A stretch of 64,000 bases of DNA, from assembly GCF_006345805.1 (NCBI RefSeq), contig NC_043018.1:13702001-13766000 (forward strand). The letters are read 5' to 3'. The translations under genes and the position numbers were made by a program. How positions within the stretch are numbered: the first letter of the stretch is position 1; the number at the start of each line of letters is the position of its first letter. This stretch comes from Octopus sinensis. Taxonomy: Eukaryota. A model generated the notes under the pieces. The model worked only from the letters and a program-made list of their open reading frames with translations, did not search any database and had not been told where the DNA came from. Shown here piece by piece: positions 1-40,850 of the stretch.

Positions 1-162
1 GGATTCTTGTTTCGGTTGTGCATGTTGTGAGTTGAAGTCCCGTCGGTAAATTAAACACCAGTATCATCTAATCCCATCTCTAAATATTCTTTGCTTTCTC
101 CCTTGATGTGACACATTAATGTAATTATATTTTCTATTTCCTATGATATTCTGTATTTACAG

Positions 163-382
163 CAACCCTCACGCGGGAAATGGAACGTGCAATCCAGTGT
201 TCTGTCTCTTAAGCTCAACAACACCACACTTACCTTGCTGCTCAGGTTCGAATATTTGTACATGCAGACCTTATCGTTTCTGCAAATGTAATTCTCAGAA
301 TATGATCCATGTGGCTAATAACGGTATACTCCAAACTGTGATAATTTTTCTGATTTTTTTTGTAAATTTACCATCTTATTAA
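163..382 (+). CDS. K1: terminal exon of an agatoxin-like 8-Cys knottin peptide gene (upstream exons lie outside the window)
   Basis: Acceptor TTCTGTATTTACAG ends at 162 (phase 2). Reads NPHAGNGTCNPVFCLLSSTTPHLPCCSGSNICTCRPYRFCKCNSQNMIHVANNGILQTVIIFLIFFVNLPSY*, framework C-x4-C-x10-CC-x5-CxC-x5-CxC. The ORF-track N-terminus MIFCIY is intron sequence. Confidence 0.8.
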
Positions 383-655
383 CGTTCTGCTCTACTGAAT
401 CTTGTGGATAAATGTCATACGTTCGATTGTTTTTATACAAGGGGAAAATCGGTGAGATCACGAAGTCAGACAAAACAAAGGATCCAAACACGCAGCAAAA
501 TAGACTCGACTCCAAAAATATCAATAAGTGTTGTTGCTGTTAATGCTGCTGCTGCTACTTCGTCTCCTGCCCTACTCCTTCTCTTCCTCCTACTACTACC
601 TTTTCAATTTTGAAATTAACTCAACTATAAAATCCTATAACAATATAACACTTTG

Positions 656-661
656 AATAAA
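656..661 (+). promoter_or_regulatory. Candidate poly(A) signal of K1
   Basis: AATAAA about 270 nt after the stop. The same site is present in K2 (10695-10700, minus) and deleted in K3. Confidence 0.4.
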
Positions 662-942
662 CGTCAGAAAGATAGTGAAATATAAAATATTAACGAGCAG
701 ATGTTTGATTTTGTAATTTATCCTGGAAAGAAATTCACGTATGTTGCGCCAAGAAATGAAATGGTTAAAATATGTAAACAATAACCAACAATCATGAGTT
801 TTCTAACAACCCTAATTTTGGACGACAATCGCATCAAATATCTCATTTATGCTATTAATCCGTGAAATTTTAATGAAATTTCAATTAAATTCATTTATTA
901 AACTATTACAAATATTCAGTGCTTTGTTCTTCGTTGTTCTTT

Positions 943-1227
943 TTGTTTATACGTCATTGAACGTAACAAACTCTTTGTGCTTCGTTCTTCGCTGTCCTAT
1001 TTGTTTATACGTCATTGAACGTAACAAACTCTTTGTGCTTCGTTCTTCGCTGTCCTATTTGTTTATACGTCATAGAACGTAACAAATTCTATGTGCTTCG
1101 TTCTTCGCTGTCCCATTTGTTTATACGTCATTGAACGTAGCAAATTCTATGTGCTTCGTTCTTCGCTGTCCCATTTGTTTATACGTCATTGAAAGTAACA
1201 AACTCTTTGTGCTTCGTTCTTCGCTGT
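943..1227. repeat. 58-bp minisatellite, about 5 units, downstream of K1
   Basis: ACGTCA core recurs at 951, 1009, 1067, 1125 and 1183. Confidence 0.9.
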
Positions 1228-1859
1228 GGTGTTTTTTTTTAAAGTTTTGGATATGGAGGGTAAGATTTTACATTGGAGTGTCACACTATATTATTGTAAA
1301 AGCCAGAATATTCTGCAAGTTCTACATTATAACATTTAAGAAAGAAGAAACAGGAAAAAGAGAGATAAAAAAAGAAAAGCAAGGAATTATAATAGGAATT
1401 ATAAATAGATTAGTGTTCACTTCCGGATTCTATCACTCTGTGAAAGTTTCTAGTTCGAATCACACGTGTCTCGAGGTGCGCCGAAGATTTTTCTATTTTG
1501 GATATATTTGGGGTACTTAAGTCTGCTCGGGATTTGGTGCTTGCTTGTTCCATGTGTATGAATAAGTATTTCATTTATATCTCGCGTATGTGCCGCTGAA
1601 GAGGGGAAAATTTCTTGTGAATTAACCCCGAAATTGGACCAATACGGTAATAACGAATTGTTTAGAGATTTCTATCGGTTTGCTTCGAGACGCATAAATT
1701 TAATGGTTATCGACAATTTTTTGTTTCGGCGTAACTGGCATTAGAATTTTTCTTCTGCCCTTATCTTGTAAATTATGTATAAATTTTACCTTTAAATGCA
1801 TTTTTTGATATGTTGGCCAATTGATAATTTTTTTTCCCCAAAAATTTTTTATCGTATAT

Positions 1860-3868
1860 CAATTATACTTAAATTCGTTTACGATAACATTAGGTATATG
1901 CAAATAGAGCTTCTATTTCACTATTCCGTGTAACGTGTAATGATACTGACCAGTGTGTCAGCATTCGGGGTCGCATCATGGTTATACAGATATAATGTAG
2001 GATAAATATGATAATAACAATCATTTTAGGATGGAATTTAGTAATATTTGCTACATCGCTACGCGTGTTTCCATAACTCACATGATTTTGACATCATGCA
2101 ACAGCACTTGCAATAGCCTGCCTACTTTTCTGATTTCTGAAGAAGGATGATACGAGTACATATGATACCACCTGAAAGAGAAACGTCAAACTAGAGACAA
2201 GTTAGCCACAGATGAAAATTGTATGGCCTCTTCTGCACTCTATGAATTTAGTTTCCGACACTATGTTTGCTATATCATAAATCAAATAAAAGTCTGGTAT
2301 GGAATATGGTGTTAGAAAAGTTTAAGACTTCCAGTAAGATAGATAAACAAAGTAGTCTAACTTGGATCTACAACAGTTGTACTGACTCGGGGTTTTAAGG
2401 TTAATTTGAAATATAGGAAGAGGATAAGCATGAAGTATATCGTCTCGTATATCCATTGCAAGCATTATGGAATTAATACTAAAATTAATCTGTAATGGAC
2501 GACTCAGTAAGATTTCCATTTGTCCCCCCCCCCAGTATTTATGGCAAAAGTGTGGGATTGTGAAGCTGATATTTGAACAACATGCACACGTGTGCCAATT
2601 CCTATTCTTATTCACCTATCTCGTAGTCTTCTTCTCTGTCTCTATCTATACATATTCTCATATGCATATATGTAAAAGACATACCTACTCGCATACAGAC
2701 GCTTACACACACAGACACACACGTGTGTGTGTGTGTGTGTTTCATATTTTGGTCACAAGGCCGGAAGGTTTGGGTGATTGAGTAAATCGATTATATCAAC
2801 CGCCGTGCTCAACTGGTACTTATTTTATCAACCCCAGAGTGATGAAAGGTAATGTCGACCTGGGCAGTGTTTGAACTCTGAACATAAAGACGGATGATGT
2901 GCCGTTAAGCAGCGACCGGTGTGCAAAATGTTCCGCTAGATCACTCTTTATAGTTATATATAAATACGTGTTTACAAACACAGTAACGTACAGATAGGCA
3001 GACTCTCATTCACACACACACAGGCTCACTCCTCACACTCTAATGATATTAAGGGAAACAAAGAATTTGAACATTCAGACTTTCTGTTTGGTTTTATTGA
3101 TAGTAATTGTCTGACACGTATTTCGATCGTATCAACTGCAAATTTCTTCATATTTATATGCAGGGATTTATGCATAATTTATACGATCTCTTCAGCCATT
3201 GTTCAAGGAGCAATTCTCCCCGTTATTAGTTTAGAAAATAGGGAAGGAAAAATGTAATTTTTGCCTCGAAGAATTATATCAAAAATTTACTTTAAAAAAT
3301 GAATTAGTTAACACTACACAAGAAAGAAGTTTTAATTGCTTGCACAAACAACGTTTTATTTTTAAAATATACAAATAATAGAAGGCAAGAAACATGTAAT
3401 TCTAGCTATTCAACTCTTTAAAACAATAACAGTAATTAAATTGAGTAAATTTACAATTAAATATTTCATTTTATTATCTGCATGGTGTCTACTGACCTGT
3501 AATCACCCACTACTATTTCCATCACAATTTAAATAGAACAACCAACCCAAAGATCTATATAATATACCATATGACTATAAGGACTGTAGAATAATTAAAA
3601 AGAATAACATGATTTACTACTACCATTACCAAGTCTGATTGAAACAAATAGCGGGAAGAATTACTCCTGGAAAAATGTCATATTTATTCACACTGAAGAG
3701 ATCGTAAAAATTAGGCATAAATCCCTGCATATAAATATGCAGCAATTTGCCATTGATGCGACATAAATACGACATAAAGGACAATTATTATGAATAAACC
3801 AAGCAGAAAGTCTTCGTTTTCCTTATTACCAGTATTGTAAGACCAAGAAGCCAGGAAATAAACCGTAA
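1860..3868 (+). repeat. ~2 kb direct duplication of ~30650-32660
   Basis: Collinear from TTAAATTCGTTTACGATAAC to AAGCCAGGAAATAAACCGTAA in both copies. Confidence 0.9.
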
Positions 3869-5177: not shown

Positions 5178-6192
5178 GGGTTTAGTGGAGGGGAGGTACG
5201 ACGACGAGCTCGGGGCGAACCTGGACGTCGACGAGGAGTACCTGACCCGCCTGTTCAGGACGACTTTCGGGCCAGGGCCCATGGACAACTTCCAGAGATC
5301 CCTGGCCTGGCAGTGCTACCGAGAAGCGCTACCCGTTCGGGATAAGCTCTACAGACACGGCTCGAGAAACACGGGGCCGACCTGCCCGAGATGCGGTCAG
5401 AGCGACGAAACCGTTCTGCACGCACTCGTGCAGTGTCCAACAATTTCCGACCTGTGGGCTTGTGTCGAACAACTGCTGTCACGTGTGGGACGAGTCGGTT
5501 TATCAGCTGAGTCTATCGTTAATATTGTCACGCCTCCCTCATTCAAACGGGAAGGAAGTGCTATTTTCATCATCCTTGTGGCTATGGCGAAAGAATGTAT
5601 CTGGTGGACGCGTCTGAAAGGATTGGAGACAAACACTTTCCTCTCTGGTCAATCTCTCATCAACTTCTTCAAGTACCACTTGAAAAGGAAAGTGAGAGTA
5701 GAGAGGCAAGTTTTGTCTAGCGAATGTTTTAAAAAAAGATGGGTGAATGTAGCAAGAATGGCACGTATGAATGACGAAGCCACCTTGAGCATGATCCTAT
5801 GAACCCAGAAATTGAAAACAGAGAGTTGCTTATTTGCAAAAAAAAAAAGAAATATAACATGTGACTCCATTGACCGAGGTTACCGTGGTCTTTTCCGTAG
5901 GCTTTTCTTTCCACGGGTAAACATCACCTGTCCTCCCCTTTACACTTCATATTGACATTTCTGTGATAACGATCCCTATTGATCAATTTTTTTTTTGTTT
6001 CCTCTCCCCACCTTTTTTTAACCCCCCTTTTTTTTAACCCCCCCTTTTTTGTCCTCTTTCTCTCCTTTTACGATCCCTTTTGATCGAAACTCCCCCTTCC
6101 TTTTTTTTTTTTTTCTTAAACCCTCAAAAGAAAAGCTCTACCTTGTAATTTGTTCTATCTGTGTGCAGCCCTGTGTGGCTAATAAAGAAACA
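5178..6192 (+). mobile_element. 5'-truncated Tx1/L1-clade non-LTR retrotransposon (C-terminal zf-RVT-type region plus 3' UTR)
   Basis: ORF 5185-5802 has the CCHC motif CPRCGQSDETVLHALVQC and a typical W-rich tail. The 3' UTR ends CTGTGTGGCTAATAAAGAAAC followed by (ATCT)n. Confidence 0.85.
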
Positions 6193-9384: not shown

Positions 9385-10131
9385 ATATATGTATATAGTT
9401 ATTTGATATTTTTTACTTCAATTTTTCAACTTCTGTCAAAAAACATTTGGGAAACTTCGTGGTCGCTTGTCTTGCAAGGAATTACTGAAAAATCATCGTC
9501 AAATCAAGTGAAACCTTCTTAAGAATGAAATGACAGTTTGGACAGTAGGAACTTATACACATCATATCGATCAAAACTTAGTTGGAAGTAATCATATCTC
9601 AATCACTTAGCATCAGGTGTTACCTTCACCACGACTGTCTTATGAACAAAACCACAATATCAATGAATAATCTTTGCAAGGACCCAACCTTGCTGCAACG
9701 GCTGCATATCCGGCTGTCATTGTCATTGAACCTGAAGAGAGAAAATTCAATATATACATTGGCCAGACTGGACTCTATCAGGTGTCACCGTCGAGACCTC
9801 GGGTGTTCTGGGAACCCGTACTACTGATTTCATCTCCAAAATAGGAATGAAGGTGCCCATCGAATAAATGAGCCCCGGGCGCGGCGGAATACACCATTTG
9901 CTCTTGGGTACGAGGCCCTCGCCCCTCCCTTCCATCTTCTACTGTTTTATATAAGTATTTTTTTTTGTTTCCTTGCTTTTCCTCTTTTATCTCTCTTTTT
10001 TCTGTTTCTTCTTTCTTAAATGTTATAATGTAGAACTTGCAGAATATTCTGGCTTTTACAATAATATAGTGTGACACTCCAATGTAAAATCTTACCATCC
10101 ATATACAAAACTTTAAAAAAAAACACCACAA

Positions 10132-10420
10132 CGAAGAACGAAGCACAAAGAGTTTGTTACGTTCAATGACGTATAAACAAATGGGACAGCGAAGAACGAA
10201 GCACATAGAATTTGCTACGTTCAATGACGTATAAACAAATAGGACAGCGAAGAACGAAGCACATAGAATTTGTTACGATCAATGACGTATAAACAAATAG
10301 GACAGCGAAGAACGAAGCACAAAGAGTTTGTTACGTTCAATGACGTATAAACAAATAGGACAGCGAAGAACGAAGCACATAGAATTTGTTACGTTCAATG
10401 ACGTATAAACAAAAAGAACA
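10132..10420. repeat. 58-bp minisatellite, about 5 units, downstream of K2
   Basis: Reverse complement of 943-1227. Confidence 0.9.
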
Positions 10421-10928
10421 ACGAAGAACAAAGCACTGAATATTTGTAATAGTTTAATAAATGAATTTAATTGAAATGTCATTAAAATTTCACGGATTAA
10501 TAGCATAAATGAGATATTTGATGCGATTGTCGTCCAAAATTAGGGTTGTTAGAAAACTCATGATTGTTGGTTATTGTTTACATATTTTTACCATTTCATT
10601 TCTTGGCGCAACATACGTGAATTTCTTTCCAGGATAAAGTACAAAATCAAACATCTGCTCGTTAATATTTTATATTTCAACTATCTTTCTGACGTTTATT
10701 CAAAGTGTTAATTTCAAAATTGAAAAGGTAGTAGTAGGAGAAGAAGGAGGAGGGGAGGAGACGAAGTAGCAGCAGCAGCATTAACAGCAACAACAATTAT
10801 TGATATTTTTGGAGTCGAGTCTATTTTGCTGCGTGTTTGGATCCTTTGTTTTGTCTCACCGATTTTCCCCTTGTATAAAAACAATGGAACGTATGACATT
10901 TATCCACAAGACTCACAGTTGCTGAACG

Positions 10929-11148
10929 TTAATAAGATGGTAAATTTACAAAAAAAATCAGAAAAACTATCACAGTTTGGAATATACCGTTATTAGCAAC
11001 GTGGATCATATTCTGAGAACTACAACGGCAGCCCTTAAAAAACGTGCATTTACAAATCTTAGATAAGCAGCAAGGATGGCTTGGTGGTCTAGAGTTGACG
11101 CCACAGTAATCTTCATAACACGGCGTTGCATTTCTCTTAATCCTGTCA
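10929..11148 (-). CDS. K2: terminal exon of an agatoxin-like 8-Cys knottin gene
   Basis: Same acceptor, phase 2. Reads DRIKR|NATPCYEDYCGVNSRPPSHPCCLSKICKCTFFKGCRCSSQNMIHVANNGIFQTVIVFLIFFVNLPSY*, with a furin-type RIKR before the knot. Confidence 0.85.
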
Positions 11149-11440
11149 CTGTAAATACAGAATATCATAGGAAATAGAAAATATAATTACATTAATGTGT
11201 CTCATCAAGGGAGAAATCAAAGAATATTTAGAGATGGGATTAGATGATACTGGTGTTTAATTTATCGACGGGACTTGAACTCACAACATGCACAACCGAA
11301 ACAAGTATCCACAAGTCATTTTTCTGCTCTTTTAACTATCACGTAGTGTATTTTCTCGAATTTTTTGAAGGATAAAGTATATAAATATATATCCAGAATT
11401 TCAAAAGTAGATGTAGACAGTGAGAGGGGTTGTGTTTTTA

Positions 11441-11603
11441 GGCGCAAGAGTGGCTGTGAGGTAAGTAGCTTTCTTATCAACCACATGGTTCCGGGTTCAG
11501 TCGCACTCCGTGGCACCTTCGGCATGTGATTGCTACTATTGGCTAGGGCCGACCAAAGCCTTGTGAGCGGATTTGCTAGACAGAAACTGAAAGAAGCCCG
11601 CCG

Positions 11604-11691
<88 letters not shown>

Positions 11692-11715
11692 TACATATAT
11701 ACATACTATATATAT

Positions 11716-11747
<32 letters not shown>

Positions 11748-11875
11748 ATATTTTACGCATGCATATGTTTCTGTATCTGTGTTTGTCCCTCCGCCATCAC
11801 TTGAAACCGATGCCGGTGTGTTTACCAGTTCGGCAAAACAGACCGATAGGATAAGTACTAGGCTTACAAAGAATA
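11441..11875 (+). mobile_element. tRNA-derived SINE family A copy with internal (TA)n
   Basis: A-box-like TGGCTGTGAGG and B-box-like GGTTCAGTC head, with the conserved body GGCCGACCAAAGCCTTGTGAG...ACCGATAG.ATAAGTAC. Confidence 0.8.
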
Positions 11876-12455
11876 TGTTACGTAAAAACAGGCTAATCAG
11901 ATATGAGATAAAAACAATTCAAAGTAAATAACTCTGAAAAAGACCTTTGTGCGTTCCCAGAGAATATTACCCCCAGGGGTGCTAGTGTTGGTATATTCGT
12001 GAATAAGATACTAAACAAAATAAGTGGATCTATTGTTTAGGAAAATAATATTTGTTTGTCTAAGGGTTGTACTGGATAAATTGTGAAAATAACTAACAGT
12101 TCTAATACTAAGAAATAAACATACTCAATTTCAATTTTACCGCATAATTTAGGAAAATGAAAGAGTTATTTCCCTTGGCTATACATAAGGTTCCCTTCCA
12201 GGGATGAACAGATTATTTCTTTTGGTTTTTAAAATAAAATATATTAGATATATATAAGGATCTCTTCTAGGGGCCCCTTTTTTTCGATGTTTTCAATAAT
12301 CTGAGTATGCCATGAGGTTTCCAGCCAAGAGTTCTACTAACATGTTATGTGTCATCAAAATCGATAAAACGATGTAGGAGGAGTTAGCTAACAACTCCAC
12401 AAGCACACCCACAGATAGAACATCCTACATATGTAGTATATTATATATATAATAA

Positions 12456-12498
<43 letters not shown>

Positions 12499-12541
12499 AT
12501 ATTACATATATATACATATATATACATATATATACATATAT

Positions 12542-12588
<47 letters not shown>

Positions 12589-13309
12589 ATAGTCGAAGCA
12601 TTTGTCCGTAAATATTCTCCATTTTATTTACTGTGAATGAAATGTTCTTACTTCAAGCATATCTGACTTGTATAATTGTATGATTTTTATTTCTGCCCAA
12701 CGCTATATTTGAAATGTTCACAGTCAAAAGTATTTTCTCTGTTTTCTATAGCTAAAATCAGTCTTTCCTTAACATTTCGATGTAGATTGAGTATATATGT
12801 TGCACTGGTATCTAACACCATACCTGGATAAACATAACCGTTTACTGCAAAACAAATGTATCATATGATCCTCACACAGAAAATCATGAAATCGTCATCT
12901 TTTCAAATATAGAACTCTCTAAAAGAGCATCATTTTACGTATGTTTCAATTAATGGCTTCTCTATTTCTTTTGTCTCTTAGTGATTTCAGCTACTAATCT
13001 CGGCATGGAAGAACTTGAAAAATAATCGATGATCAGGTACTCCAGGTATTCGTCTGATACCAGAAAGAATTAATGCATGGGTAAATGCGCAGCAATGTGC
13101 AGAATAGCAACAATCATTGAAAGCAATTGTCCTGGAAATGCGACTGGTGCATTTCTTTCCCACTGCAATGCTACGTCGTAGGCATTCCGGAACCGGAACA
13201 CGTCGATTTTGCTCTACCTGTGGGAACGATTTCGGTAAATGTCCAAAAATGATTTCAAGATTCTACATTCCATTTTAGACATGACATTCTAGCCAAACAC
13301 GCACACACA

Positions 13310-13340
<31 letters not shown>

Positions 13341-13668
13341 TGTACACACACACAAACATACACACACGCATGCAAACTGAGTTTGTAGTTCACAAAACAC
13401 GATTCACGTGATGGATAACGGCATAATGCTGACTGTAATATTATACTGACATTACACTCGTGTTGTGAGTATGGAGAATAGATATCATTCATTAGGTTGT
13501 TGAGAAACAAGGAGAGAACTGGCGGTTCACGATGATACGGCATTAGATCTTTAACATCAACGTGGAAGTCGTAGTGAAGGACATACACACACACACACAC
13601 ACACGTCCATACACACCTACATACATACATACATATACAGATGTGTGTGTATGTGTGTGTGTGTGTGG

Positions 13669-13817
13669 AGGCGCAATGGCCTACTGGTTAGGGCAGCGGA
13701 CTCTCGGTCGGAAGATCGCGGTTTCGATTCCCAGACCAGGCGTTGTGTGTGTTTATTGAGCGGAAACATCTAAAAGCTCCACGAATTTCAGGCAGGGGGT
13801 GGTGAAGACCACTGTTG

Positions 13818-13852
<35 letters not shown>

Positions 13853-13925
13853 TGTTTCGTGAGTAACGCTGGGATGGTCTAGCGTGCCGTCCAGCTGGGG
13901 AGAGGGAACTGGCTAGGCTTCAAAA
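13669..13925 (+). mobile_element. tRNA-derived SINE family C copy (inverted partner at ~26200-26450)
   Basis: tRNA-like head GGCGCAATGGCCTACTGGTTAGGGCAGCGGACTCTCGGTCGGAAGATCGCGGTTTCGATTCCC. Confidence 0.7.
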
Positions 13926-13945
13926 GGGCGACGTTGATCGTTTCG

Positions 13946-13985
<40 letters not shown>

Positions 13986-15131
13986 CGGACTTATTTTCAG
14001 TTTCCGCTTTCCAAGTTCACTTAAAAGGCTTTGGTCGGCCCTAGTGTAGTGTAGAAAATTGGCATCAGTTATTTCACTTCTTTCATTCGTCCATTCATCC
14101 GTACACACCAACGTACGAACACAAAACACACACATACATACACATACAAACAAATATAAATTTTTACAAGGAAAAGTTTGACAGTGACTGCGCAGTTTCA
14201 GTTTGCTCTCCCTCACCAGACTAACTAATGAATAAAACACAAAGTTTGCCATAACAGGAGTTGAATTCAGAACACGGGAGGATGGAATTAAATATTAAAT
14301 TATGATACATTTCAGGGCTCAGGACGGGCCACAATGGAGTGTTGCGTTCACATCTGGCATGATGCTGTTCCTATACACACAACTGTCTTAGACCGCATCC
14401 AGAGAAAGAGTACTTCACGTATTGCCCACCAGCATGTTGTTTCCTCTCTCCGTCTTTTCTAACGCTACTGCACCTATAATGGCGTCTGCTCTCTGAATCT
14501 CGCCTCCACCCAGACGTTCTCATATTATTCATCTTTCTCCTTCTCATCATTCTAGTTGTGTCCAAACCTCAAGCCCAACTGTAATTCCTACACCTATTCC
14601 TTCCCTCCCAGGATACCAGCTTCATGGAATTCCATCACGGTTCATTCCTTTTCCGTAAGTGTTCACTTACAAAGTTTAAAGATGAAAGTGATGACAAAAA
14701 TTTCGTAGGCAAAATATAAAAAAAAATATTATTTGATTTTTACTCATGAAAGTAATTTTCTTTTCGATAAATCTCGCTTCATATCTTCCCCTTTCAGATT
14801 TTCTGTTACGCAGAAACTATAATTTAGAAACCGTCTCAGAATTTGAATTTGCCAATATTTAATAACTTTTCTATCATAGACACAAGGCCCTGAAACGTTG
14901 ATGGAGGCTGCTACTCTGTTACACGGACACTTGCTCCCGCTACCATTTATTGCAGCGACCCAGAAATAATGGAAGAGGCAGTCAACATCGGCGAAATTTC
15001 AACCCCAAACTTAAAGCCGGAATTAGTGCCACAAAGTGTTTTATCCAGAGTGCTAATGATTGTGCCAGCTTACCACCTGGGCAATACTAAATTAATTACA
15101 TATATAAGAGATGTAGATATGTAGTTCTTAC

Positions 15132-15192
15132 CTACGAGCCATTTCACTCAAGCTTACATAAGCTCCAGTCTGTTGATGGACGGGAGAGACGT
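15132..15192 (-). CDS. K2 propeptide exon (61 nt, phase 1 to phase 2)
   Basis: TTTTAATGTCTCTTTCAG|...|GTAAGA. Reads (D)VSPVHQQTGAYVSLSEMAR(AG|T=S) and splices in frame to the knottin exon at 11148. Confidence 0.75.
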
Positions 15193-15847
15193 CTGAAAGA
15201 GACATTAAAATACACACGGAAGAATTAGATATCAATTTATCAAAGTTTTGTGTAGAAATACACAAAAGATGCAGGATCATTATGACTGGAACTCATATTT
15301 CCTCTCTCAGACTGTTAATATGGCCCATCACTGTAGTGATGGACATTTCTAATGCATAAAGGAGATAAAAACCAATGGAGCAATAAAAAGGAAAGAGAAG
15401 AAAACAAACAAACAAAAAATACACGAGACATTATATACAGCTCCTGCTGATTCTATTCTTTAATGATTTTAATAATTACGAGTCCAAAAGGCGGTGGCGA
15501 ACTGACGGAATTCTTAGCTCGACAGACAATATGCTTAGCGGCATTTCGGCCGTGCTTACCTTCTGATCTTATATAGAAGTAACAGATCCGAGCTTCACGA
15601 CATTATCGCTAATTTAATTGCACCAATAGTACTAATGCAAATTTAATTCCACCAAAAGTAGCAATGTAAATATATAACTCAGGTGAAGATGATGTCTTCG
15701 AAGCATTTGTCCGTAAATATTCTCCATACGGTTGACTGTGAATGAAATGTTCTTACTTCAAAAGTATCTTGCTTCTATAGAATATATTGGTTTTACTTCT
15801 GTCCGAAATAAGTATTTGAGGCTTGTCAAATACTTACTTACACATAC

Positions 15848-15908
<61 letters not shown>

Positions 15909-18424: not shown

Positions 18425-18810
18425 ATACACTTGTTTCAGTCATGTGACTGTGGCCATGCTGAAGCACAGCCTTTATTCGAGCAAATTGGCCCCAGGACTT
18501 ATTCTTTGCAAGCCTAGTACTTATTCTATCGGTCTCTTTTGCCAAACCGCTAAGTTACGGGGACGTAAACACACCAGCATCGGTTGTCAAGCGATGTTGG
18601 GGGGGGGGGACAAACATAGACACACAAACATATACTCACAGATACATATATATAGATATATATACATACATATATACGACGGCCTTCTTTCAGTTTCCAT
18701 CTACCAAATCCACTCACAAGGATTTGGTCGGCCCGAGAATATAGTAGAAGACACTTGCCCAAGGTGCCACGCAATGGGACTGAACCCGGAACCATGTGGT
18801 TCGTAAGCAA
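18425..18810 (-). mobile_element. SINE family A copy
   Basis: Reverse complement of the family A consensus. Confidence 0.8.
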
Positions 18811-19342
18811 GCTACGTTCAACTTCAAAAAGATGAAGATCTCTAGCAAAGGAAACATATAGAGAATTGCCATCCATGCACGCACAAAGTTGAATGGATAA
18901 AGATAGATGTAGAAAATTGATAAATGTAGTTAGCAATTCTGGTGAACTACAAAAGTAAAATATTTGACTATCTGAGACCCATTTAGTGCATTTAGTGAAG
19001 AACGGAATGATGTTGTTGATAATATTCGACTCGTAACAAACACTGGTGGACAGTGAATTCTCTCCAGATGTTAGTATCAGTAAACCGAGGAAAGGTGATG
19101 AATATTTCAGAAGTAGATGTTGAACGAGTTATTTCCAACTGATGAGCTCAAACTAGGTTTTTGCACAGAGAGGGTGAAATCAATTGATCCTGAAATAGAC
19201 ACATTTCTTACTTCTGTATTCCACGAAAGGAAAGCCTGCTTCTGCTATATTCGTTGCATTGCTCGTGTGTATTTTGGAGGTACGGGTCTGTTTATAGCAA
19301 GTGGTATTTAAATAGCCTACGATATCTATCTACCTACCTACC

Positions 19343-24060: not shown

Positions 24061-25565
24061 TATGGTACAAAGAATTGTATTTGGAAAATATGAATCAGTT
24101 TACCCCGCACTTTTTGGATGAGCTCGAGCTTTTCTAATTCTAATGTTTTGGTTAATGCTAATTATTTGTGAAGAAAAAAAGTAAACATATTTAGGCGGAT
24201 ATTTGTGCTGTTCATTTCTCATTAATTTACGAAAGATGCTTCTATTTTTTTTTCATGACGAGACATTCACATCCATTAAACTTTGCAACAGAGCACGACT
24301 GCAGCCCTCAAATCCTATCATCGGGTTGCTGTTTTTATTGAGTTGTTGCACCAGTATTCTTTGATTTGAAATGTGTGAATACATTCTGGTTCTGGTCTAT
24401 ATTTGACATAGCAGTAAAAACAACAGGTTTTTTATACAGCGTTTTTAGATGGTGTGTGTATGTTTGTAAGTATTTGACAAGCCTCAAATACTTGTTTCAG
24501 ACAGAAGTCAAACCAATATATTCTATAGGAGCCAGATACTTTGAAGTAAGAACATTTTATTCACAGTCAACAGTATGGAGAATATTTACGGACAAATGCT
24601 TCGAAGACATCATCTTCACCTCAGTTATATATTTACATTAGTACTTTTGGTGGAATAAATTTGCATTAGTACTTTTGGTGCAATTAAATTAGCTACTTAT
24701 TGTTTAAACGACAATGTCGTGAAGCTCGGATTTTCGTGAAATAAATTTGGATAGCGAAAAAAATAAGTGTTACTATTTCAGCTGCAGATTCCGTTTGTAA
24801 TGACTCCCGTTGTTTTATTTCTCTATCAGTAGGTGTGTGAAAAAAAGCATCAGTGTCCTATTGTTTTGTGTATCCATTTCATACACCTTCTCCGATAAAC
24901 AAGTAAGTATAATAAGAAATATCTTTTATTTTATAGTCATCAGGTATGTAGTGGGAGAAAAAGAGGGAGAGAAGAAAAATGAATACCCTTACCCAGCTGT
25001 ACTTCGTATGTACCCCATTTATATGTAATTACAACTTTCAAAGAAATAACTCTACACATAGGTCAAATATTCAGAATTACGATTCTTCAACATAATATAA
25101 AACATTTCCTTAACAATATAACTGACGAATCTTTTATATACAAACCAAGAAGAATTCTAGTGGTGTGCTCTGATCTGTTACTTCTATACAGGATCAGAAC
25201 GTAAGCACGGCCGAAATGCCGCTAAGCATATAGTCTGTCGAGCTAAGAATTCCGTCAGTTCGCCACCGCCTTTTGGACTCATAATTATTAAAATCATTAA
25301 AGAATAGAATCAGCAGGAGCTGTATATAATGTCTCGTGTATTGTTTGTTTGTTTGTTTGTTTTCTTCTCTTTCCTTTTAATTACTCCATTGGTTTTTTAT
25401 CTCCTTATGCATTAGAAATGTCCATCACTACAGTGATGGGCCATATTAACAGTCTGAGAGAGGAAATATGAGTTCCAGTCGTAATGATCTGCATCTTTTG
25501 TGTATTTCTACACAAAAAGTAAATTGATATCTAATTTTCCGTGTGTATTTTAATGTCTCTTTCAG

Positions 25566-25625
25566 ACGTCTCTCCGTCCATCAACCGACTGGAGCTAATG
25601 TAATTTTGAGTGAAATGGCTCGTAG
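25566..25625 (+). CDS. K3 propeptide exon (60 nt; one C short relative to K2, so frameshifted as assembled)
   Basis: Same acceptor and GTAAGA donor as 15132-15192. Restoring one C in TCTCC(C)GTC gives (D)VSPVHQPTGANVILSEMAR(S). Confidence 0.6.
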
Positions 25626-26133
25626 GTAAGAACTACATATCACATCTCTTATATATGTAATTAATTTAGTATTCTCTGAATGCGGTCTAAGACAGTTGTG
25701 TATATAGGAACAGCATCGTCCCAGATGTGAAAGCAACACTCCATTGTGGCCCGTCCTGAGCTCTGAAATGTATCATAATTTAATATTTAATTCCATCCTC
25801 CCGTGTTCTGAATTCAAATCCTGTTATCGCCAACTTTGTGTTTTTATTCATTAGTTAGTCTGGTGAGGGAGAGCAAACTGAAACTGCGCAGTCACTGTCA
25901 AACTTTTCCTTGTAAAAATTTATATTTGTTTGTATGTGTATGTATATATGTGTGTGTGTGTGTGTTTGTGTGTGAGTACGTGGGTGTGTACGGATGAATG
26001 GACGAACGAAAGAAGTGAAACTCTTTTTCTAATAAACTGATGCCAATTTTCTACACTACACTCGACCGACCAAAGCCTTTAAGTGAACTTGGAAAGCGGA
26101 AACTGAAAATAAGTCCGTATATATATATATATC

Positions 26134-26166
<33 letters not shown>

Positions 26167-26774
26167 ATATATAGAACGAAACGATCAAACGTCGCCCTTT
26201 TGAAGCCTAGCCAGTTCCCTTCTCCCCAGCTGGACGGACGCTAGACCATCCCAGCGTTACTCACGAAACAGGAAGAGAGAGAGAGAGAGAGAGAGAGGTG
26301 CAACAGTGGTCTTCACCACCCCCTGCCTGAAATTCGTGGAGCTTTTAGGTGTTTCCGCTCAATAAACACACACAACGCCTGGTGTGGGAATCGAAACCGC
26401 GATCCTCCGACCGCGAGTCCGCTGCTCTAACCAGTAGGCCATTACGCCTCCACGCACACACACATACACACACATCTGTATATGTATGTATGTAGGTGTG
26501 TATGGACGTGTGTGTGTGTGTGTGTGTATGTCCTTCACTACGACTTCCACGTTGATGTTAAAGATCTAATGCCGTATCATCGTGAACCGCCATTTCTCTC
26601 CTTGTTTCTCAACAACCTAATGAATGATATCTATTCTCCATACTCACAACACGAGTGTAATGTCAGTATAATATTACAGTCAGCATTATACCGTTATCCA
26701 TCACGTGAATCGTGTTTTGTGAACTACAAACTCAGTTTGCATGCGTGTGTGTATGTTTGTGTGTGTGTGTCCTT

Positions 26775-26811
<37 letters not shown>

Positions 26812-27604
26812 GTATATGTTTGTGTGTGTTGTGCGTGTTTGGCAAGAATGTCATGTCTAAAATGGAATGTAGAATCTTGAAATCAATTTTTGGACAGTTA
26901 CCGAAATCTTTCCCACAGGTAGAGCAAAATCGACGTGTTCCGGTTCCGGAATGCCTACGACGTAGCATTGCAGTTGGAAAGAAATGCACCAGTCGCATTT
27001 CCAGGACAATTGCTTTCAATGATTGTTGCTATTCTGCACATTGCTGCGCATTTACCCATGCATTAATTCTTTCTGGTATCAGACGAATACCTGGAGTACC
27101 TGTTCATCGATTATTTTTCAAGTTCTTCCATGCCGAGATTAGTAGCTGAAATCACTAAGAGACAAAAGAAATAGAGAAGCCATTAATTGAAACATACGTA
27201 AAATGATGCTCTTTTAGGGAGTTCTATATTTGAAAAGATGACGATTTCATGATTTTCTGTGTGAGGATCATTTGATACATTTGTTTTGCAGTAAGCGATT
27301 ATGTTTATCCAGGAATGGTGTTAGATACCAGTGCAACATATATACACAATCTACATCGAAATGTTAAGGAAAGACTGATTTTAGTTATAGAAAACAGAGA
27401 AAATACTTTTGACTGTGAACATTTCAAATATAGCGTTCCGTCAAATGCGAATTGCTTGGGGCATAAATAAAAATCATAGAGTTATACAAGCCAGATATGC
27501 TTGAAGTAAGAACATTTCATTCACAGTAAACAAAATGGAGAATATTTACGGACAAATGCTTAGAATATATATATATATATATATATAACTCCTCCTACAT
27601 CGTT

Positions 27605-27644
<40 letters not shown>

Positions 27645-28124
27645 TATAATATATTATATATATATATATATATATATTATATATTAATATATATATATAT
27701 ATATATATTATTATATATATAATATACTACATATGTAGGATGTTCTATCTATGGGTGTGCTTGTGGAGTTATTAGCTAACTCCTCCTACATCGATTTATC
27801 GATTTTGATGACACTTAACATGTTAGTAGAACTCATGTCTGGAAACCTCATGACATACTCAGAATATTGAAAACATCGATAATAGGGCCCCTAGAAGGGA
27901 TCCTTTTTATATATCTAATTTATCCAGTACAACCCTTAGACAAATAAATATTATTTTCCTAAAAAATAGATCCACTCATTTTGGTTAGTGACTTATTCAC
28001 GAATATACCAACACTAGCGCCCCTGAGGGTAATATTCTCTGGGAACGAACAAAGATCCTTTTCAGAGTTATTTACTTTGAAATATTAATATCTCATATCA
28101 GATTAGCCCGTTTTTTTGGTAACA

Positions 28125-28274
28125 TATTCTTTGTAAGCCTAGTACTTATCCTATCGGTTGTTTTGCCGAACTGGTAAGTTACATGGACTTAAACACACCG
28201 GCATCGGTTTCAAGTGATAGCGGGGGGACAAACACAGATACAGAATCATATACATGCTTAAATATATATATATA

Positions 28275-28318
<44 letters not shown>

Positions 28319-28480
28319 GGGCGGCATCTTTCAGTTTCTGTCTACCAAATCTGCTCACAAGGCTTTGGTCGGCCCTAGTCAATAGTAGCAATCACCTGAC
28401 CAAGGTGCCACGCAGTGCGACTGAACCCGGAACCATTTGGTTGGTAAGAAAGCTACTTACTTCACAGCCACTCTTGCGCC
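28125..28480 (-). mobile_element. SINE family A copy (mirror of 11441-11875)
   Basis: Same insertion point upstream of the knottin exon in both arms. Confidence 0.8.
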
Positions 28481-28763
28481 TAAAAACAACAACCCCTCTC
28501 ATGTCTACATCTACTTATGAAATTCTGGATATATTTATATACTTTATCCTTAAAAAATTCGAGAAAATACACTAGGTGAGAGAAAGAACAAAAAATGACT
28601 TGTGGATTCCTGTTTCGGTGTGCATGTTGTGAGTTCAAGTCCGTCGATAAATTAAACACCAGTATCATCTAATCCCAGCTCTAAATATTCTTTGCTTTCT
28701 CCCTTGATGAGACACCTTAATTTAATAATATTTTCTATTTCCTATCATATTCTGTATTTACAG

Positions 28764-28974
28764 TGACAAGATTAAGAGAAATGTACGGACGTGTTTTGAA
28801 GATTACTGTGGCGCCACCATAAAACCATTAAACCATCCTTGCTGCTCAGCTAAGAAGCGTTGTAAATGCATACCTTTTAAGGGCTGCCGTTGTAGTTCTC
28901 AGAATATGATCCATGTGGCTAATAACGGTATACTCCAAACTGTGATAGTTTTTCTGATTTTTTTTTTAAATTAA
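28764..28974 (+). CDS. K3: terminal exon of an agatoxin-like 8-Cys knottin gene (absent from the ORF track)
   Basis: Acceptor TTCTGTATTTACAG ends at 28763. Reads DKIKR|NVRTCFEDYCGATIKPLNHPCCSAKKRCKCIPFKGCRCSSQNMIHVANNGILQTVIVFLIFFLN*, with TAA at 28972-28974. Confidence 0.8.
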
Positions 28975-29420
28975 CGTTCTGCACCTGTGAATCTTGTGGA
29001 TAAATGTCATACGTTCGATTGTTTTTATACAAGGGAAAATCGGTCGGTGAGATCACGAAGTCAGACAAAACAAAGGATCCAAATACACAGCAAAAATACA
29101 CTCGACTCCAAAAATATCAATAAGTGTTGTTGCTGTTAATGCTGCTGCTGCTACTTCGTCTCCTCCCCTCCTCCTCCTTCTCTTACTACTACCTTTTCAA
29201 TTTTGTAATTTATCCTGGAAAGAAATTCACGTATTTTGTGCCAAGAAATGAAATGGTAAAAATATGTAAACAATAACCAACAATCATGAGTTTTCTAACA
29301 ACCCTAATTTTGGACGACAATCGCATCAAATATCTCATTTATGCTATTAATCCGTGAAATTTTAATGAAAGTTCAATTAAATTAATTTATTAAATTATTA
29401 CAAATATTTAGTGCTTTGTT

Positions 29421-29545
29421 CTTCGCTGTCCTAGTTTTTATACGTCATTGAACGTAACAAACTCTTTGTGCTTCGTTCTTCGCTGTCCTATTTGTTTATA
29501 CGTCATTGAACGTAACAAATTCTATGTGCTTCGTTCTTCGCTGTG
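29421..29545. repeat. 58-bp minisatellite, about 2 units, downstream of K3
   Basis: Same unit as 943-1227. Confidence 0.85.
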
Positions 29546-30382
29546 GTGTTTTTTTTTAAAGCTTTGTATATGGATGGTAAGATTTTACATTGGAGTGTCA
29601 CACTATATTATTGTAAAAGCCAGAATATTCTGCAAGTTCTACATTATAACATTTAAGAAAGAAGAAACAGGAAACAGAGAGATAAAAGAGGAAAAGCAAG
29701 GAAACAAAAAAATACTGATATAAAACAGTAGAAGATGGAAGGGAGGGGCGATGGGCCTCGTACCCAAGAGCAAATGGTGTATTCCGCCGCGCCCGGGGCT
29801 CATTTATTCGATGGGCCACCTTCATTCCTATTTTGGTGATGAAATCAGTAGTGCGGGTTCCCAGAACACCCGAGGTCTCGACGGTGACATCTGATAGAGT
29901 CCAGTGAGGCCAATGTATATATTGAATTTTCTCTCTTCAGGTTTAATGACAATGACAGCCGGATATGCAGCCGTTGCAGCAAGGTTGGGTCCTAGCAAAA
30001 ATTATTCATTGATATTGTGGTTTTGTTCATAAGACAGTCGTGGTGAAGCTAACACCTGATGCTAAGTGATTTAGATATGATTACTTCCAGCTAAGTTTTG
30101 ATCGATATGATGTGTATAAGTTCCTACTGTCCAAACTGTCATTTCATTCTTAAGAAGGTTGCACTTGATTTGACGATGATTTTTCAGTAATTCCTTGCAA
30201 GACAAGCGACCACGAAGTTTTCCCAAATGCTTTTTGACAGAAGTTGCAAAATTGAAATAAAAATTGTCAAATAACTATATACATATATATATACTTTATT
30301 TAAAGCAGCAGAAAAATTCAACAAAACTGTTAGTCTGAGTTTCACGTTCGCGTCGTCGGACAGTTTTTCGAGAGAAGATATG

Positions 30383-33326: not shown

Positions 33327-33450
33327 TATATAAATATGCATATATTTGCTTCTTTGTCGTTGTGTTTCCTTTCAACACCGTTTGACAGCTGGCGTCAGTT
33401 TGTGGAGTTTCCTTGGTTTGCGGTTCAGCGAAACACTCAACAGAGTAAGT
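33327..33450 (+). promoter_or_regulatory. Candidate TATA box and non-coding first exon of K4
   Basis: TATATAAA at 33327-33334, an Inr-like TCAGTT near 33396, and donor AGA|GTAAGT at 33445. K4's ATG exon has an upstream acceptor, so a 5' UTR exon is expected. Confidence 0.35.
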
Positions 33451-34648: not shown

Positions 34649-34721
34649 ATGAAAACACTCCTTGTTGTTCTCTGCTTTTGGTACTGTGTGCTAGTTTCGA
34701 ACGTCTTAACGTTTAAGTTAG
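34649..34721 (+). CDS. K4 coding exon 1: signal peptide
   Basis: Acceptor TTTGTATATTAACAG ends at 34640 and ATG is at 34649. Reads MKTLLVVLCFWYCVLVSNVLTFKL, then a phase-1 donor TTAG|GTAAGT. Confidence 0.8.
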
Positions 34722-36410: not shown

Positions 36411-36493
36411 GAGAGAATACTATACATTTGAATATTTTGGAACATTCTGCTGGTAAACCAAAATCTAATCTTGAAGCTTCTCTTATATATCAG

Positions 36494-36551
36494 TGCATGA
36501 TGAAGCAGCTGCCCACATTGATCTGGAACCAGTCGATGGTTTGATAAAAAG
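36494..36551 (+). CDS. K4 coding exon 3 (58 nt, phase 1 to phase 2, acidic propeptide)
   Basis: CTTCTCTTATATATCAG|...AAAAAG|GTAAGA. Reads (V)HDEAAAHIDLEPVDGLIK, and AG|A forms the R of a KR site. Confidence 0.8.
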
Positions 36552-38314
36552 GTAAGAATTTTATAACAATGATTATAACTTTTATCGACTATCATGGTCG
36601 ATAAAATCCAACCTAGCACATTGTTCATTTGTGTACATTCAGGTGAGGTCTGAGACCAAAATCAGTGCATAATGGCGGCCGTATCCTGGACACACATTGA
36701 AACACACACCTGTATTATTTCTAGCCTTCATTCCCACGCGCTTTTCTCTTTCGCCGACTCATCTTTCATTTACGTAAGCTGCCTCAATTCGGATTTGTTT
36801 GTGGCCACAAGTTCCCTAATCAAGTCTCGTGACTAGACACCCTGATGGATGAAAAACAACACTCAGCTAAGGGCTTCGGTTCATGAGAGCCATCAATGGC
36901 CAACCAGCTATGGGAGTGGACAATCATAACTACGACAGTTGTATTTATGGTATTAGAGCTGTTGGCGAAATATTTATTCGTAGGCTGATGATAAGTTTGT
37001 CGGTGTATCTGCACTAAATGGTCCTTATTCTTTTAAAATAGCATTCAATAAAGCTATGGTACTGTGAACATATCGATTAGTCTCTTTTTTTAACAGTACC
37101 CTAAACGTAATAGTCCATGAGATTTTTAATCTGGAGAGTCTGATGATCATAACTTCGGTTTTACATGATTGTATGGATTGTCTGACATCTGTTGCTGGAT
37201 TCTTGGCTTCTTTGTGTTGGTGCTGTGTCTTGTTGATACTCGTTTGACATCCCAACGCACAGTACATCCATCTGGGCTTAATAACTGTCTGCAGTATTTC
37301 AACACATCCAACAGCATAAATTATAAGACCTTGTAGAAAAACGCCGTGTGGCATGGTATATCCTCTGTTACTCACTAATCTCAAATCCGTCTTAGTCGCT
37401 ACAGTTTTAGTGTGCAACACTCCAGGGACATCAGAAGAATTTGTGCATAACCGCCTGTCATTTCATTCGTCAGACTTTTGGTTTCGATCGAAGATTTTCT
37501 CCTCAAAGAAGAACCAAAGCATACCATATTCGAATGGATTAACACTAATTTACCACTTGACAAGAACCAGACGGTTCATGAATTGGCTTCTTCTCAATAC
37601 GTACAATTTGTATCGCGTGTCCTCCTTCATTACAGATTTGATAGTCCGCTTCTATAACTGAAAGTCTTTGGTAATATCCCTCAACGATAATCCGGGATAA
37701 TGTTTGAAGCCCTGTAGATAATTTGTGTTGTCCAGTTAGTGTTTGAAGGATTAGAAAATGTTCTCTTTGATACTCTTTGAAACATTCCCACCAGAGTTTC
37801 CAGTTTCAATTCCATTTGAATTTCTTGTACGAAAAATCCTGTAATATTTAGAAATAAGCAGCATTGCAATAATTAAAAACAGACGAGAATACGCATACAT
37901 ATACAAGCACACGCACAAACACACGCACACACATACACACACACATACACAAACACACACATGCACACACACATACACACACACATGCACACCCACACGT
38001 ATCTACATGAATAATGCGACCAAATGGGAAACTCACTTGGGTATTATCAGATATATTGTCCTTCACAGAATATCACCTTGTGTTTTGAATTCAAATAATG
38101 CCAGAGGCTAAATTTCATTATCATCTTATTGGAGATGAGATGCATGGAACCAAAGGTGTTCAGCGATGGGTTCTCTGTGTTTTTCTCATTCCTCGGGTAG
38201 CGATGAATTGCTCCGTGTCTACAAATACAGGAGTAACGGTACATGCCGATGGCACCGCGAGACGAGGCTAATGTAATGATACTCTTGAGTGTGTGTGTGT
38301 GTGTGTGGTGTTGC

Positions 38315-39714: not shown

Positions 39715-40144
39715 CTATATATATATATATATGTATGCATATGTGGCGGTGTGGTACGATGCTTGCTCCCGAGGTACACTGTTTCGAGTTGGTACACAAG
39801 TTGCTTTGCGTGAATTACTATTTTTGATGTTGTCATTACTCATATGGTTCAATAATGCAAATATCTGGGTGGTATGCTGTGTAAAGGGTACTCACCAATG
39901 AGCACAGTATGCTTAAATCCTACCATCTGGTAACTGCGGTACCCATCCCAGATGAATCTAGCCTGTTACGATTCATGTTTGTGATTTTAAAAGCACCATA
40001 AATCTACGAGTAGGCTTCTTAGTGTGAATGCCTTCAAATGATACATCCACGTTTATATAAAGATATAGTGTCTCATAATATTGATACTGCTTCTGTCGGT
40101 AGCTTTTGTATTTATAAGTCTGTTCATATTTTCTGTATTTACAG

Positions 40145-40328
40145 AGAGGCTAAAGGAGATGACGTTAAATGTGCAATATATAAATGGTCGTGCACTATCA
40201 AAACAACTACAGTAGATCTTACTTGCTGTGAAGGTATGGAGTGTAGATGTAACCGGTTCTGGAAATCGAACTGCCGCTGTTATGAATTGACATATGAGGA
40301 TATGGGAATCAATCCTCCATCTGGCTGA
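40145..40328 (+). CDS. K4 terminal exon: agatoxin-like knottin mature peptide with C-terminal Gly
   Basis: Acceptor TTTTCTGTATTTACAG ends at 40144. Reads EAKGDDVKCAIYKWSCTIKTTTVDLTCCEGMECRCNRFWKSNCRCYELTYEDMGINPPSG*. The exons total 73+60+58+184=375 nt, i.e. 124 aa plus stop. Confidence 0.88.
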
Positions 40329-40830: not shown

Positions 40831-40850
40831 ATAGTCGTAATGATGATTGA

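Follow-up and report, generated by a model that had tools for sequence, protein, structure and literature searches.

Why do two neighbouring copies of a cysteine-rich exon, embedded in nearly identical DNA, differ so strongly from each other in the Octopus sinensis genome, and are those differences the product of selection? We have addressed this question in a 64-kb stretch of contig NC_043018.1 (positions 13,702,001 to 13,766,000), referred to below as the window, which contains four copies, K1 to K4, of an exon that encodes a small eight-Cys knot. An initial annotation of the K2 copy had proposed that K2 and K3 differ only by substitutions that change amino acids, around frozen Cys codons and between nearly identical introns, and had ascribed this to diversifying selection of the conotoxin type. 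Our analysis showed that the residue-changing pattern is real and that positive (diversifying) selection on the loops of this knot family is supported, both by ratios of nonsynonymous to synonymous change (dN/dS) above 1 and by the contrast with flanking DNA. It also showed that the Cys codons enjoy no special protection.

A tblastn search with the peptide of the K2 exon identified the four knots in the window, each with an identical 13-nt acceptor motif to its 5' side. The K2 exon lies on the minus strand, with the acceptor ...TTCTGTATTTACAG|T at 11148; its reading frame starts at 11147, begins with DRIKRNATPCYEDYCGVNSRPPSHPCCLSKICKCTFFKGCRC and then continues. By translation, tblastn and codon comparison with K3, the K2 knot region was placed at 11022-11147 (-; 42 codons), where the dibasic processing site DRIKR is followed by the pattern C-x4-C-x10-CC-x4-C-x-C-x5-C-x-C. 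The open reading frame (ORF) runs on through a C-terminal tail of 30 codons, SSQNMIHVANNGIFQTVIVFLIFFVNLPSY, to a TAA stop at 10931-10929 (tail and stop together, 10929-11021, -), and the terminal exon in full is therefore 11148-10929. The K3 terminal exon is on the plus strand (28764-28974), with the knot at 28765-28893 (43 codons), the tail at 28894-28971 and the stop at 28972-28974; in a three-way alignment its tail is 4 residues shorter because of a 12-bp deletion. The K1 terminal exon (163-382, +) has its knot at 164-289, tail at 290-379 and stop at 380-382, with the upstream exons beyond the window edge. K4, whose knot is at 40170-40280 (+), is more distant from the other three. Self-blastn and alignment of the arms showed that K2 and K3 are carried by the left (9385-15854) and right (24452-30288) arms of an inverted duplication with 6.5-kb arms that are 88-96% identical and a spacer of ~8.6 kb. 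The K1 flank (1-3868) is a third copy of this DNA, 94-96% identical to the K3 flank by self-blastn.

Codon alignment of K2 (11147-11019) with K3 (28765-28896) gave 43 aligned codons and one in-frame 3-nt indel (LSK-I vs SAKKR). We observed that 16 of the 43 codons differ, through 23 nt differences distributed 7/14/2 over codon positions 1/2/3, and that no codon differs synonymously only. The 13 codons plus the loop between the CC pair and the fifth Cys that were listed in the initial annotation are the same set as these 16 codons and the indel, and its reading of them as uniformly residue-changing was borne out. Its Cys codon series was also exact: TGT,TGT,TGC,TGC,TGT,TGC,TGC,TGT in both K2 and K3, with K1 matching at 7 of the 8. 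Outside the knot, the arms mismatch at 220 of 5097 aligned bases (4.3%), compared with 22-23 of 129 bases (17-18%) within it, which makes the flanks about 4-fold less diverged than the knot (Fisher p=7e-8 against the flanks, p=9e-6 against the +-500 surrounding columns). The three-way alignment showed that divergence begins at the first exon codons and ends at the last Cys. Near-identity of the flanking introns, as originally described, thus holds at the level of 4.3% divergence; however, the downstream portion that had been taken for intron is the conserved coding tail. There, only 4 of 78 nt distinguish K2 from K3, compared with the 23 of 129 nt that do so within the knot (p=0.01). When 23 random substitutions were placed on K2 in simulation, only 1.8-3.5% of trials had no synonymous-only codon, 0.4% had two or fewer third-position changes (P=0.004), and 1.5-1.9% kept all eight Cys, and we therefore take the K2-K3 pattern to be real and beyond chance. 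That all eight Cys codons agree at their third positions is, at 4% neutral divergence, simply what is expected (P=0.70).

For tests of selection we used a GY94 codon-likelihood procedure written for this analysis and run under three codon-frequency models, including equal and F1x4 frequencies; the verdicts were unchanged across the three. The estimate of omega (dN/dS) for K2-K3 was unbounded, with a likelihood-ratio test (LRT) value of 6.4 and p=0.012 (p=0.007 under equal or F1x4 frequencies), and for K1, K2 and K3 together omega was 26 with an LRT value of 16.6. An independent O. bimaculoides pair, in which the LOC128250514 knot is compared with an unannotated one 1 kb from it, gave an omega of 4.0 (p=0.02-0.03). 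The excess over 1 persisted as sequences were added, since the joint analysis of K1-K3 and the O. bimaculoides pair gave an omega of 7-10 (LRT 22.3, p=2e-6 to 4e-5). On the tails, omega was ~1 with very few changes. Across all 45 pairs of the ten tail-bearing exons, the proportion of nonsynonymous differences (pN) in the knot (0.20-0.56) was far above that in the tail (0.03-0.36), and in four close pairs, whose flanks and tails are 3-15% diverged, tail pN was 0.03-0.05 and knot pN 0.20-0.46. For K2-K3, dN was ~5 times the divergence (K) of the flanks. In contrast, K4 and its O. bimaculoides orthologue LOC128250542, which are 79% identical and lie in collinear flanks of 80-91% identity, gave a pN of 0.09, a proportion of synonymous differences (pS) of 0.17 and a dN/dS of 0.49.

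The neutral rate within the knot itself was estimated from sites at which a synonymous change is unambiguous, namely Cys third positions and codons for the same non-Cys residue, in 10 family members. Within O. sinensis, Cys third positions differed at a frequency of 0.083, tail synonymous third positions at 0.052 and flanks at 0.063, and 1 of 27 same-residue non-Cys codons differed; over K1-K3 this amounts to 3 differences in 51 pair-sites in the knot (~6%), as in the flanks and tail. Between species, Cys third positions and tail synonymous third positions each differed at 0.23 and same-residue non-Cys codons at 27 of 101; unambiguous synonymous sites gave 0.22-0.27 in the knot against 0.18-0.23 in its surroundings. 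The idea that Cys codons are frozen did not survive this comparison, and special protection of these codons was rejected: their third positions drift at the neutral rate, varying as often as tail synonymous positions and flanks. Position-specific usage does exist throughout the family (Cys5 is TGT in 16 of 16 exons, Cys7 is TGC in 15 of 16), and shared Cys codon usage is simple inheritance from a recent ancestor. Site-specific Cys codon usage has also been reported for conotoxins, where it was argued to reflect protection (PMC3823881); unlike the case made there, the octopus pattern is fully explained by neutral drift.

To place K2 and K3 among their relatives, we turned to protein databases. 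A word-based search with the K2 exon product alone returned no match, and Octopus proteins were the only matches to a hidden Markov model (HMM) of the four knots among 1.84 billion proteins. The HMM matches were an O. vulgaris chimeric model, CAI9738754.1 (P0001), and O. bimaculoides LOC128250511, in which a K4-like knot is preceded by a signal peptide and by a propeptide with RHKR at its end. A search seeded with an alignment returned nine RefSeq proteins, all named 'uncharacterized', which are encoded by seven loci of O. bimaculoides and by LOC115223109 of O. sinensis. K1, K2 and K3 were not represented in any O. sinensis protein of the database searched. A further search, seeded with a 14-sequence alignment, added one more O. 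bimaculoides isoform and no other taxa, the profile searches having covered 1.84 billion and 5.8 billion proteins in all. Literature searches for octopus knottins or inhibitor cystine knot (ICK) peptides, salivary-gland cysteine-rich peptides and the LOC and XP identifiers gave nothing relevant. On these searches the family appears to be undescribed and restricted to Octopus in current databases.

The RefSeq family members have in common a signal peptide, a KR site and eight Cys, and six of the O. bimaculoides proteins include the tail in their annotation. The order in that species is MKGISVLLFCVFISYTFSDKQ (signal), propeptide, K/R-x-K-R site, hypervariable 8-Cys knot, tail SSQNMIHVANNGILQTVIAFLIFFVNLPSY and stop. 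Joining three exons (64, 49 and 217 nt) at canonical splice sites reproduced protein P0011 exactly, which places the introns in phases 1 and 2, the signal-peptide exon ending in phase 1 and the short propeptide exon in phase 2, and puts knot and tail in one terminal exon. Because the tail is encoded in that exon, the sequence downstream of the last Cys is coding and not intron. A splice donor after ...HVANN (AACG|GTATA), as used in O. vulgaris P0001, was considered and rejected, since translation continues to ...NLPSY* in the six RefSeq proteins of O. bimaculoides and also in the exact reconstruction of P0011. The 30-residue hydrophobic tail is a property of the K1-K3 subfamily and is absent from genes of the K4 type, and the signal peptides of the two octopus subfamilies are not alike. 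The KR site directly 5' of the knot is missing in K1 (164-190; NPHAGNGTC), LOC128250517 (NEDTTPYVPC) and LOC128250516 X2 (NTVKGIFNQC), and processing may differ between paralogues.

In O. bimaculoides, a cluster of 114 kb, tiled by six loci, holds 10 knot exons in mixed orientation, seven with tails and three without, of which two are unannotated. The latter, at L002:16959-17174 (-) and L002:21940-22155 (-), are complete knot-plus-tail exons that are not among the annotated proteins found; one of them, only ~1 kb from the LOC128250514 terminal exon, may be an alternative to that exon or may have arisen by its recent duplication. Another tail-bearing knot exon, L007:415-543 (-), lies 7 Mb from the main cluster and adjoins the K4 orthologue, which indicates that the pairing of tail-less with tail-bearing genes has been conserved between the two species despite the separate chromosomal location of the main O. 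bimaculoides cluster. The O. vulgaris model CAI9738754.1 is a 121-kb 'gene' that joins exons of at least 4 paralogues to unrelated first and last exons. It matches the window at 28762-28926, 36490-36552, 40137-40232 and 56702-56761, its residues 149-203 are 100% identical to the K3 exon, and it includes two further truncated knots, DNIKRKVRKCYGHYCGVKSGKPRYPCCSTKKI..., which represent paralogues just outside the window; it splices at the GTs of Cys codons and after ...HVANN, and it skips the damaged K3 propeptide exon. The family thus presents an annotation problem, being unannotated in O. sinensis except for K4 and merged into one model in O. vulgaris.

Both K2 and K3 carry lesions in their 5' exons. 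The K2 propeptide exon, which we located by tblastn with O. vulgaris model P0001 and by reading of the nucleotide sequence, is intact (61 nt, 15132-15192, -); it reads (D)VSPVHQQTGAYVSLSEMAR and ends AG|GTAAGA in phase 2. The K2 arm is, however, without a segment of ~435 bp (K3 coordinates 24732-25166) that carries the signal exon, and collinearity with O. bimaculoides L001 33170-33612 shows this segment to be ancestral and lost from the K2 arm. By blastn of the exon against the window there is no K2 copy, the K3 remnant being the only one, and heuristic scans upstream of K2 and K3 for an ATG, a hydrophobic core and a GT donor in phases 0-2 revealed no credible signal exon. The K3 remnant, KKSISVLLFCVSISYTFSDKQ (24840-24902, +), was located by collinearity and alignment with the signal exon of O. 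bimaculoides LOC128250516, and the 60-nt K3 propeptide exon (25566-25625, +) by alignment with K2 and O. bimaculoides. In K3 the start codon has changed from ATG to AAA (24840-24842) and two 1-nt deletions are present, one before the signal-exon donor (near 24900) and one in the propeptide exon (near 25575), such that conceptual splicing leads to premature stops; the O. sinensis annotation calls no gene over K3. Neither terminal exon has a premature stop, and the sole knot indel is in frame. Judged by start codon, signal exon and open frame, K2 and K3 do not qualify as functional genes and K4 does, and from the lesions in their 5' exons K2 and K3 are probably recent pseudogenes.

Two differences between the arms, the missing 435-bp segment and a stretch of ~676 bp in the second intron of the K2 arm (14407-15082) that has no counterpart in the K3 arm, indicate that the arms differ mainly by large indels. 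Within the second intron of both K2 and K3, in the opposite orientation to the gene, is a relic of another tail-bearing knot exon, CSSQNTIHVMDNGIMLTVILY*, at 13381-13443 (+) with its mirror at ~26731-26670 (-); a CA/TG microsatellite occupies the position where the knot of this relic would be expected.

We consider it probable that the whole history of K2 and K3 is one of duplication of a tandem-family knot exon, selected changes in its loops and subsequent 5' inactivation. The K2 knot is the mature-peptide part of the last exon of one member of an Octopus tandem family, and K2 and K3 represent the arms of a recent 6.5-kb inverted duplication with ~4% neutral divergence. After duplication, replacements between the cysteines accumulated 4-5 times faster than the surrounding neutral changes, with the Cys residues kept and with synonymous sites, tail and introns drifting at the background rate. 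The probable cause is positive (diversifying) selection on the face that a rigid, disulfide-linked scaffold presents for binding, in a birth-and-death family. The disabling lesions, that is, deletion of the K2 signal exon and loss of the K3 start codon together with frameshifts, would have come later, a timing that we infer, and K2 and K3 would then be young pseudogenes that still bear the selected differences. Several points weigh against this explanation. The Nei-Gojobori contrast for K2-K3 alone (dN 0.232, dS 0.098) is not significant (Fisher p=0.24); the sample comprises 43 codons and a handful of paralogues; and multi-nucleotide mutations, of which the several double hits among 23 changes in 16 codons are suggestive, can inflate likelihood tests of omega. 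The AlphaFold models discussed below are of only moderate confidence, and the fold matches are not significant. The 1-nt deletions in K3 could be assembly errors. Finally, had K2 and K3 been non-functional throughout the greater part of their existence, direct selection on them would not have been possible, and gene conversion from functional donors would have to account for their differences.

Four other explanations must be compared with this one. A mutator targeted to the mature-peptide part of the exon, sparing Cys codons and acting without selection, was once proposed for conopeptides; it would account for the sharp boundaries of divergence at the acceptor and after the last Cys, for the presence of the same Cys codon at most positions family-wide, and for the raised Nei-Gojobori knot pS in pairs that include K1 (0.26-0.34, vs 0-0.10 in the tail). 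This last excess looks like an artefact of multi-hit codons, however, because the unambiguous synonymous sites of the knot are not raised above the ~6% of flanks and tail. Moreover, third positions are avoided (7/14/2, P=0.004), which is unexpected of a mutator blind to codons, and the transition/transversion counts of the knot (13:9) are not distinct from those of the flanks (103:117), and we regard such a mutator as very improbable. Equality of the neutral rates in the knot and its surroundings argues as well against an old exon in young flanks, in which knots that diverged at an ordinary rate sit in arms homogenised by gene conversion. Inverted repeats 8.6 kb apart are an arrangement prone to conversion, and the K1 flanks are likewise 90-96% identical to the other copies; but synonymous-type knot sites are as young as the flanks, the tail is conserved (4/78 nt) only a few bases beyond the last Cys, and conversion tracts would have had to stop at the same two points in three pairs and in the O. 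bimaculoides pair. Even then, selection against conversion in the loops would be required, and this history seems to us improbable, if somewhat less so than the mutator.

The lesions themselves suggest a third possibility, that K2 and K3 are dead partial duplicates and that their differences are the noise of relaxed constraint. K2 is without its signal exon, K3 is without an ATG, frameshifted and truncated in its tail, and neither is annotated as an O. sinensis gene. For a decaying sequence the neutral rate is a ceiling, yet the knot is 4 times as diverged as 5 kb of flanks; third positions and Cys codons are avoided (P=0.015-0.019 for retention of the eight Cys), the sole knot indel is in frame and the terminal exons are free of stops. 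Decay as the source of the differences is accordingly the least credible of the explanations considered. The most credible of the alternatives, although still unlikely, is a patchwork of short conversion tracts from diverged paralogues, with selection having acted on the donors. In our reading, the O. vulgaris P0001 knots DNIKRKVRKCYGHYCGVKSGKPRYPCCSTKKI... form a mosaic that carries the K3 states V7, R8 and KK30-31 and the K2 states Y11, V17, S19, P22 and I32. Such a mosaic is equally expected from independent substitutions off a shared ancestor, and the window contained no donor that matched a tract of K2 or K3 exactly. Patchwork conversion would in any case move selection to the donor copies and not remove it.

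As to the structure on which selection would have acted, the framework C-x4-6-C-x9-11-CC-x4-5-C-x-C-x4-7-C-x-C is invariant in all 16 of the 16 knot exons examined, and the order of Cys is that by which knottins are recognized (at least 6 Cys, C-C-CC-C-C, suitable loops). AlphaFold2 models of moderate confidence (predicted local distance difference test, pLDDT, 65-67) show a small sheet of three strands, at residues 14-16, 31-35 and 39-43, and a helix over the tail (47-67). Foldseek gave no significant match in the PDB (E >=0.6); its top matches were nearly all ICK peptides (funnel-web toxin, palutoxin, psalmotoxin, agatoxin, tachystatin and gurmarin, with TM-scores of 0.5-0.68 normalised to target length). 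A sequence search of the PDB returned only scorpion alpha-KTx toxins at E >=0.3. Pfam matches were all below threshold, with 9.9 bits for K2 and 17.2 and 17.1 bits for K4 against cut-offs of 21.3 and 27 (Toxin_9/Toxin_7), and there was no Pfam match to K1 or K3. From the Cys framework and these weak structural matches, we suggest a knottin fold.

In the tail, ...HVANNG-ILQTVIAFLIFFVNLPSY, the small residues ANNG precede a hydrophobic core, and the tail terminates five residues beyond this core; in 9 of 10 copies the 13 residues of the core have a mean Kyte-Doolittle value of 2.4-2.9. Comparison of the tail between species gave a pN of ~0.1 and a pS of 0.2-0.3, and the O. bimaculoides members also have a signal peptide. 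The tail resembles a glycosylphosphatidylinositol (GPI)-attachment signal or a short transmembrane anchor, with a short spacer, and the hydrophobic C-terminus would be no less suggestive of an endogenous protein tethered to the membrane than of a venom component. A venom role for the knot peptides is possible but unsupported, and the arms race with prey, predators or pathogens that the initial annotation had put forward as the driver is likewise unsupported. Our working guess for function is a processed knot, tethered or sorted by means of the hydrophobic tail, that binds a rapidly changing partner. We suggest only tentatively that the K1-K3 subfamily, together with LOC128250513/514/516/517/536, may comprise membrane-tethered knottins whose loops are under diversifying selection, each an endogenous 'tethered toxin' or recognition molecule; candidate roles may include modulation of ion channels or receptors and recognition of gametes, pathogens or self. 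To our knowledge, a family of hypervariable, anchored knottins would be without precedent among animals.

Comparison with known systems bears on the conotoxin analogy of the initial annotation, whose elements, an invariant Cys scaffold, hypervariable loops and conserved surroundings, are all present. The C-C-CC-C-C-C-C arrangement of 8 Cys is conotoxin framework XV, and conotoxin superfamilies resemble the octopus family in that signal, pro and mature regions are divided among three exons, a dibasic site precedes the mature peptide, genes are duplicated in tandem and dN/dS exceeds 1. Unlike in conotoxins, the octopus terminal exon also encodes a conserved hydrophobic tail of 30 residues, and the profile searches, which returned only Octopus proteins, gave no sign of homology to conotoxins. 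The analogy holds for mode of evolution and not for membership. Four-disulfide ICK toxins of spiders (Pfam Toxin_9 PF02819 and Toxin_7 PF05980) have the same C-C-CC-CxC-CxC spacing as the octopus knots and are their best Pfam matches, yet these matches are below the cut-offs and the lineage is different; we know of no spider toxin family that has a hydrophobic tail. The evolution of the ICK superfamily of funnel-web spiders has been treated elsewhere (PMC4029134). Lynx1/Ly6 'prototoxins' are GPI-anchored, toxin-like modulators of receptors (PMC6502960). A small disulfide-rich domain, an N-terminal signal and a C-terminal hydrophobic anchor signal, by which the domain would be exposed on the membrane of the cell that makes it, make them a possible functional analogy only, because their fold is a three-finger LU domain with 10 Cys, in contrast to the octopus 8-Cys knot, and because the ~20 residues after the candidate omega site in the octopus tail are few for a GPI signal. 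With a different Cys framework and no Pfam match, the octopus proteins are not members of Ly6/uPAR. In the tandem clusters of rapidly evolving host-defence peptides of the defensin type, the signal exon is conserved, the mature exon is under positive selection and pseudogenes are frequent, as is typical of birth-and-death evolution. These clusters share such features with the octopus family but have another Cys framework and no homology to it.

What is known of cephalopod venoms and secretions concerns mainly enzymes, together with a small number of peptide classes. A knottin-like family that is restricted to one lineage, expands in tandem and evolves at an accelerated rate in the manner of conotoxins would add to the sources of disulfide-rich ligands and would give molluscs a second example from which to study the origin of hypervariable peptide repertoires, and the conserved hydrophobic tail raises the possibility of membrane-tethered knottins. 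Mutator and gene-conversion explanations have long been debated for conotoxins; the octopus locus is an unusually clean case for this question, in that the same-exon tail, the introns and the unambiguous synonymous sites provide internal neutral yardsticks by which selection can be separated from both.

The remaining family member in the window, K4, is the tail-less gene LOC115223109 (34649-40328, +), with exons at 34649-34721 (signal, MKTLLVVLCFWYCVLVSNVLTFKL), 36494-36551 (pro) and 40145-40328 (knot and stop). These three exons assemble into a 104-aa precursor that matches P0007, an O. sinensis XP protein, at 100% identity, and the gene is intact, with a start codon, a signal exon and a frame that is open across the exons to ...YEDMGINPPSG*. 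In the RefSeq model an extra 5' exon (33336-33444) makes the signal peptide internal to the protein, and the true start is therefore probably the MKTLL methionine. The O. sinensis locus on chromosome CM016880.1 of GCA_006345805.1 (13725336-13752328) agrees with window 23336-50328 at every one of 26,993 bp. Elsewhere in the window, long ORFs at 5185-5802 (+) and 48185-48847 (+) resemble, by eye only, protein fragments of retrotransposons that lack long terminal repeats (non-LTR). A repeat of ~350 bp is present in at least 10 copies, for example at 18429-18813, 28122-28487, 40525-40831, 41198-41630, 54737-55064 and 60211-60639. The window is also rich in microsatellites, with TA, TG and TAT/ATA-type runs that give rise to poly-Y/I ORFs.

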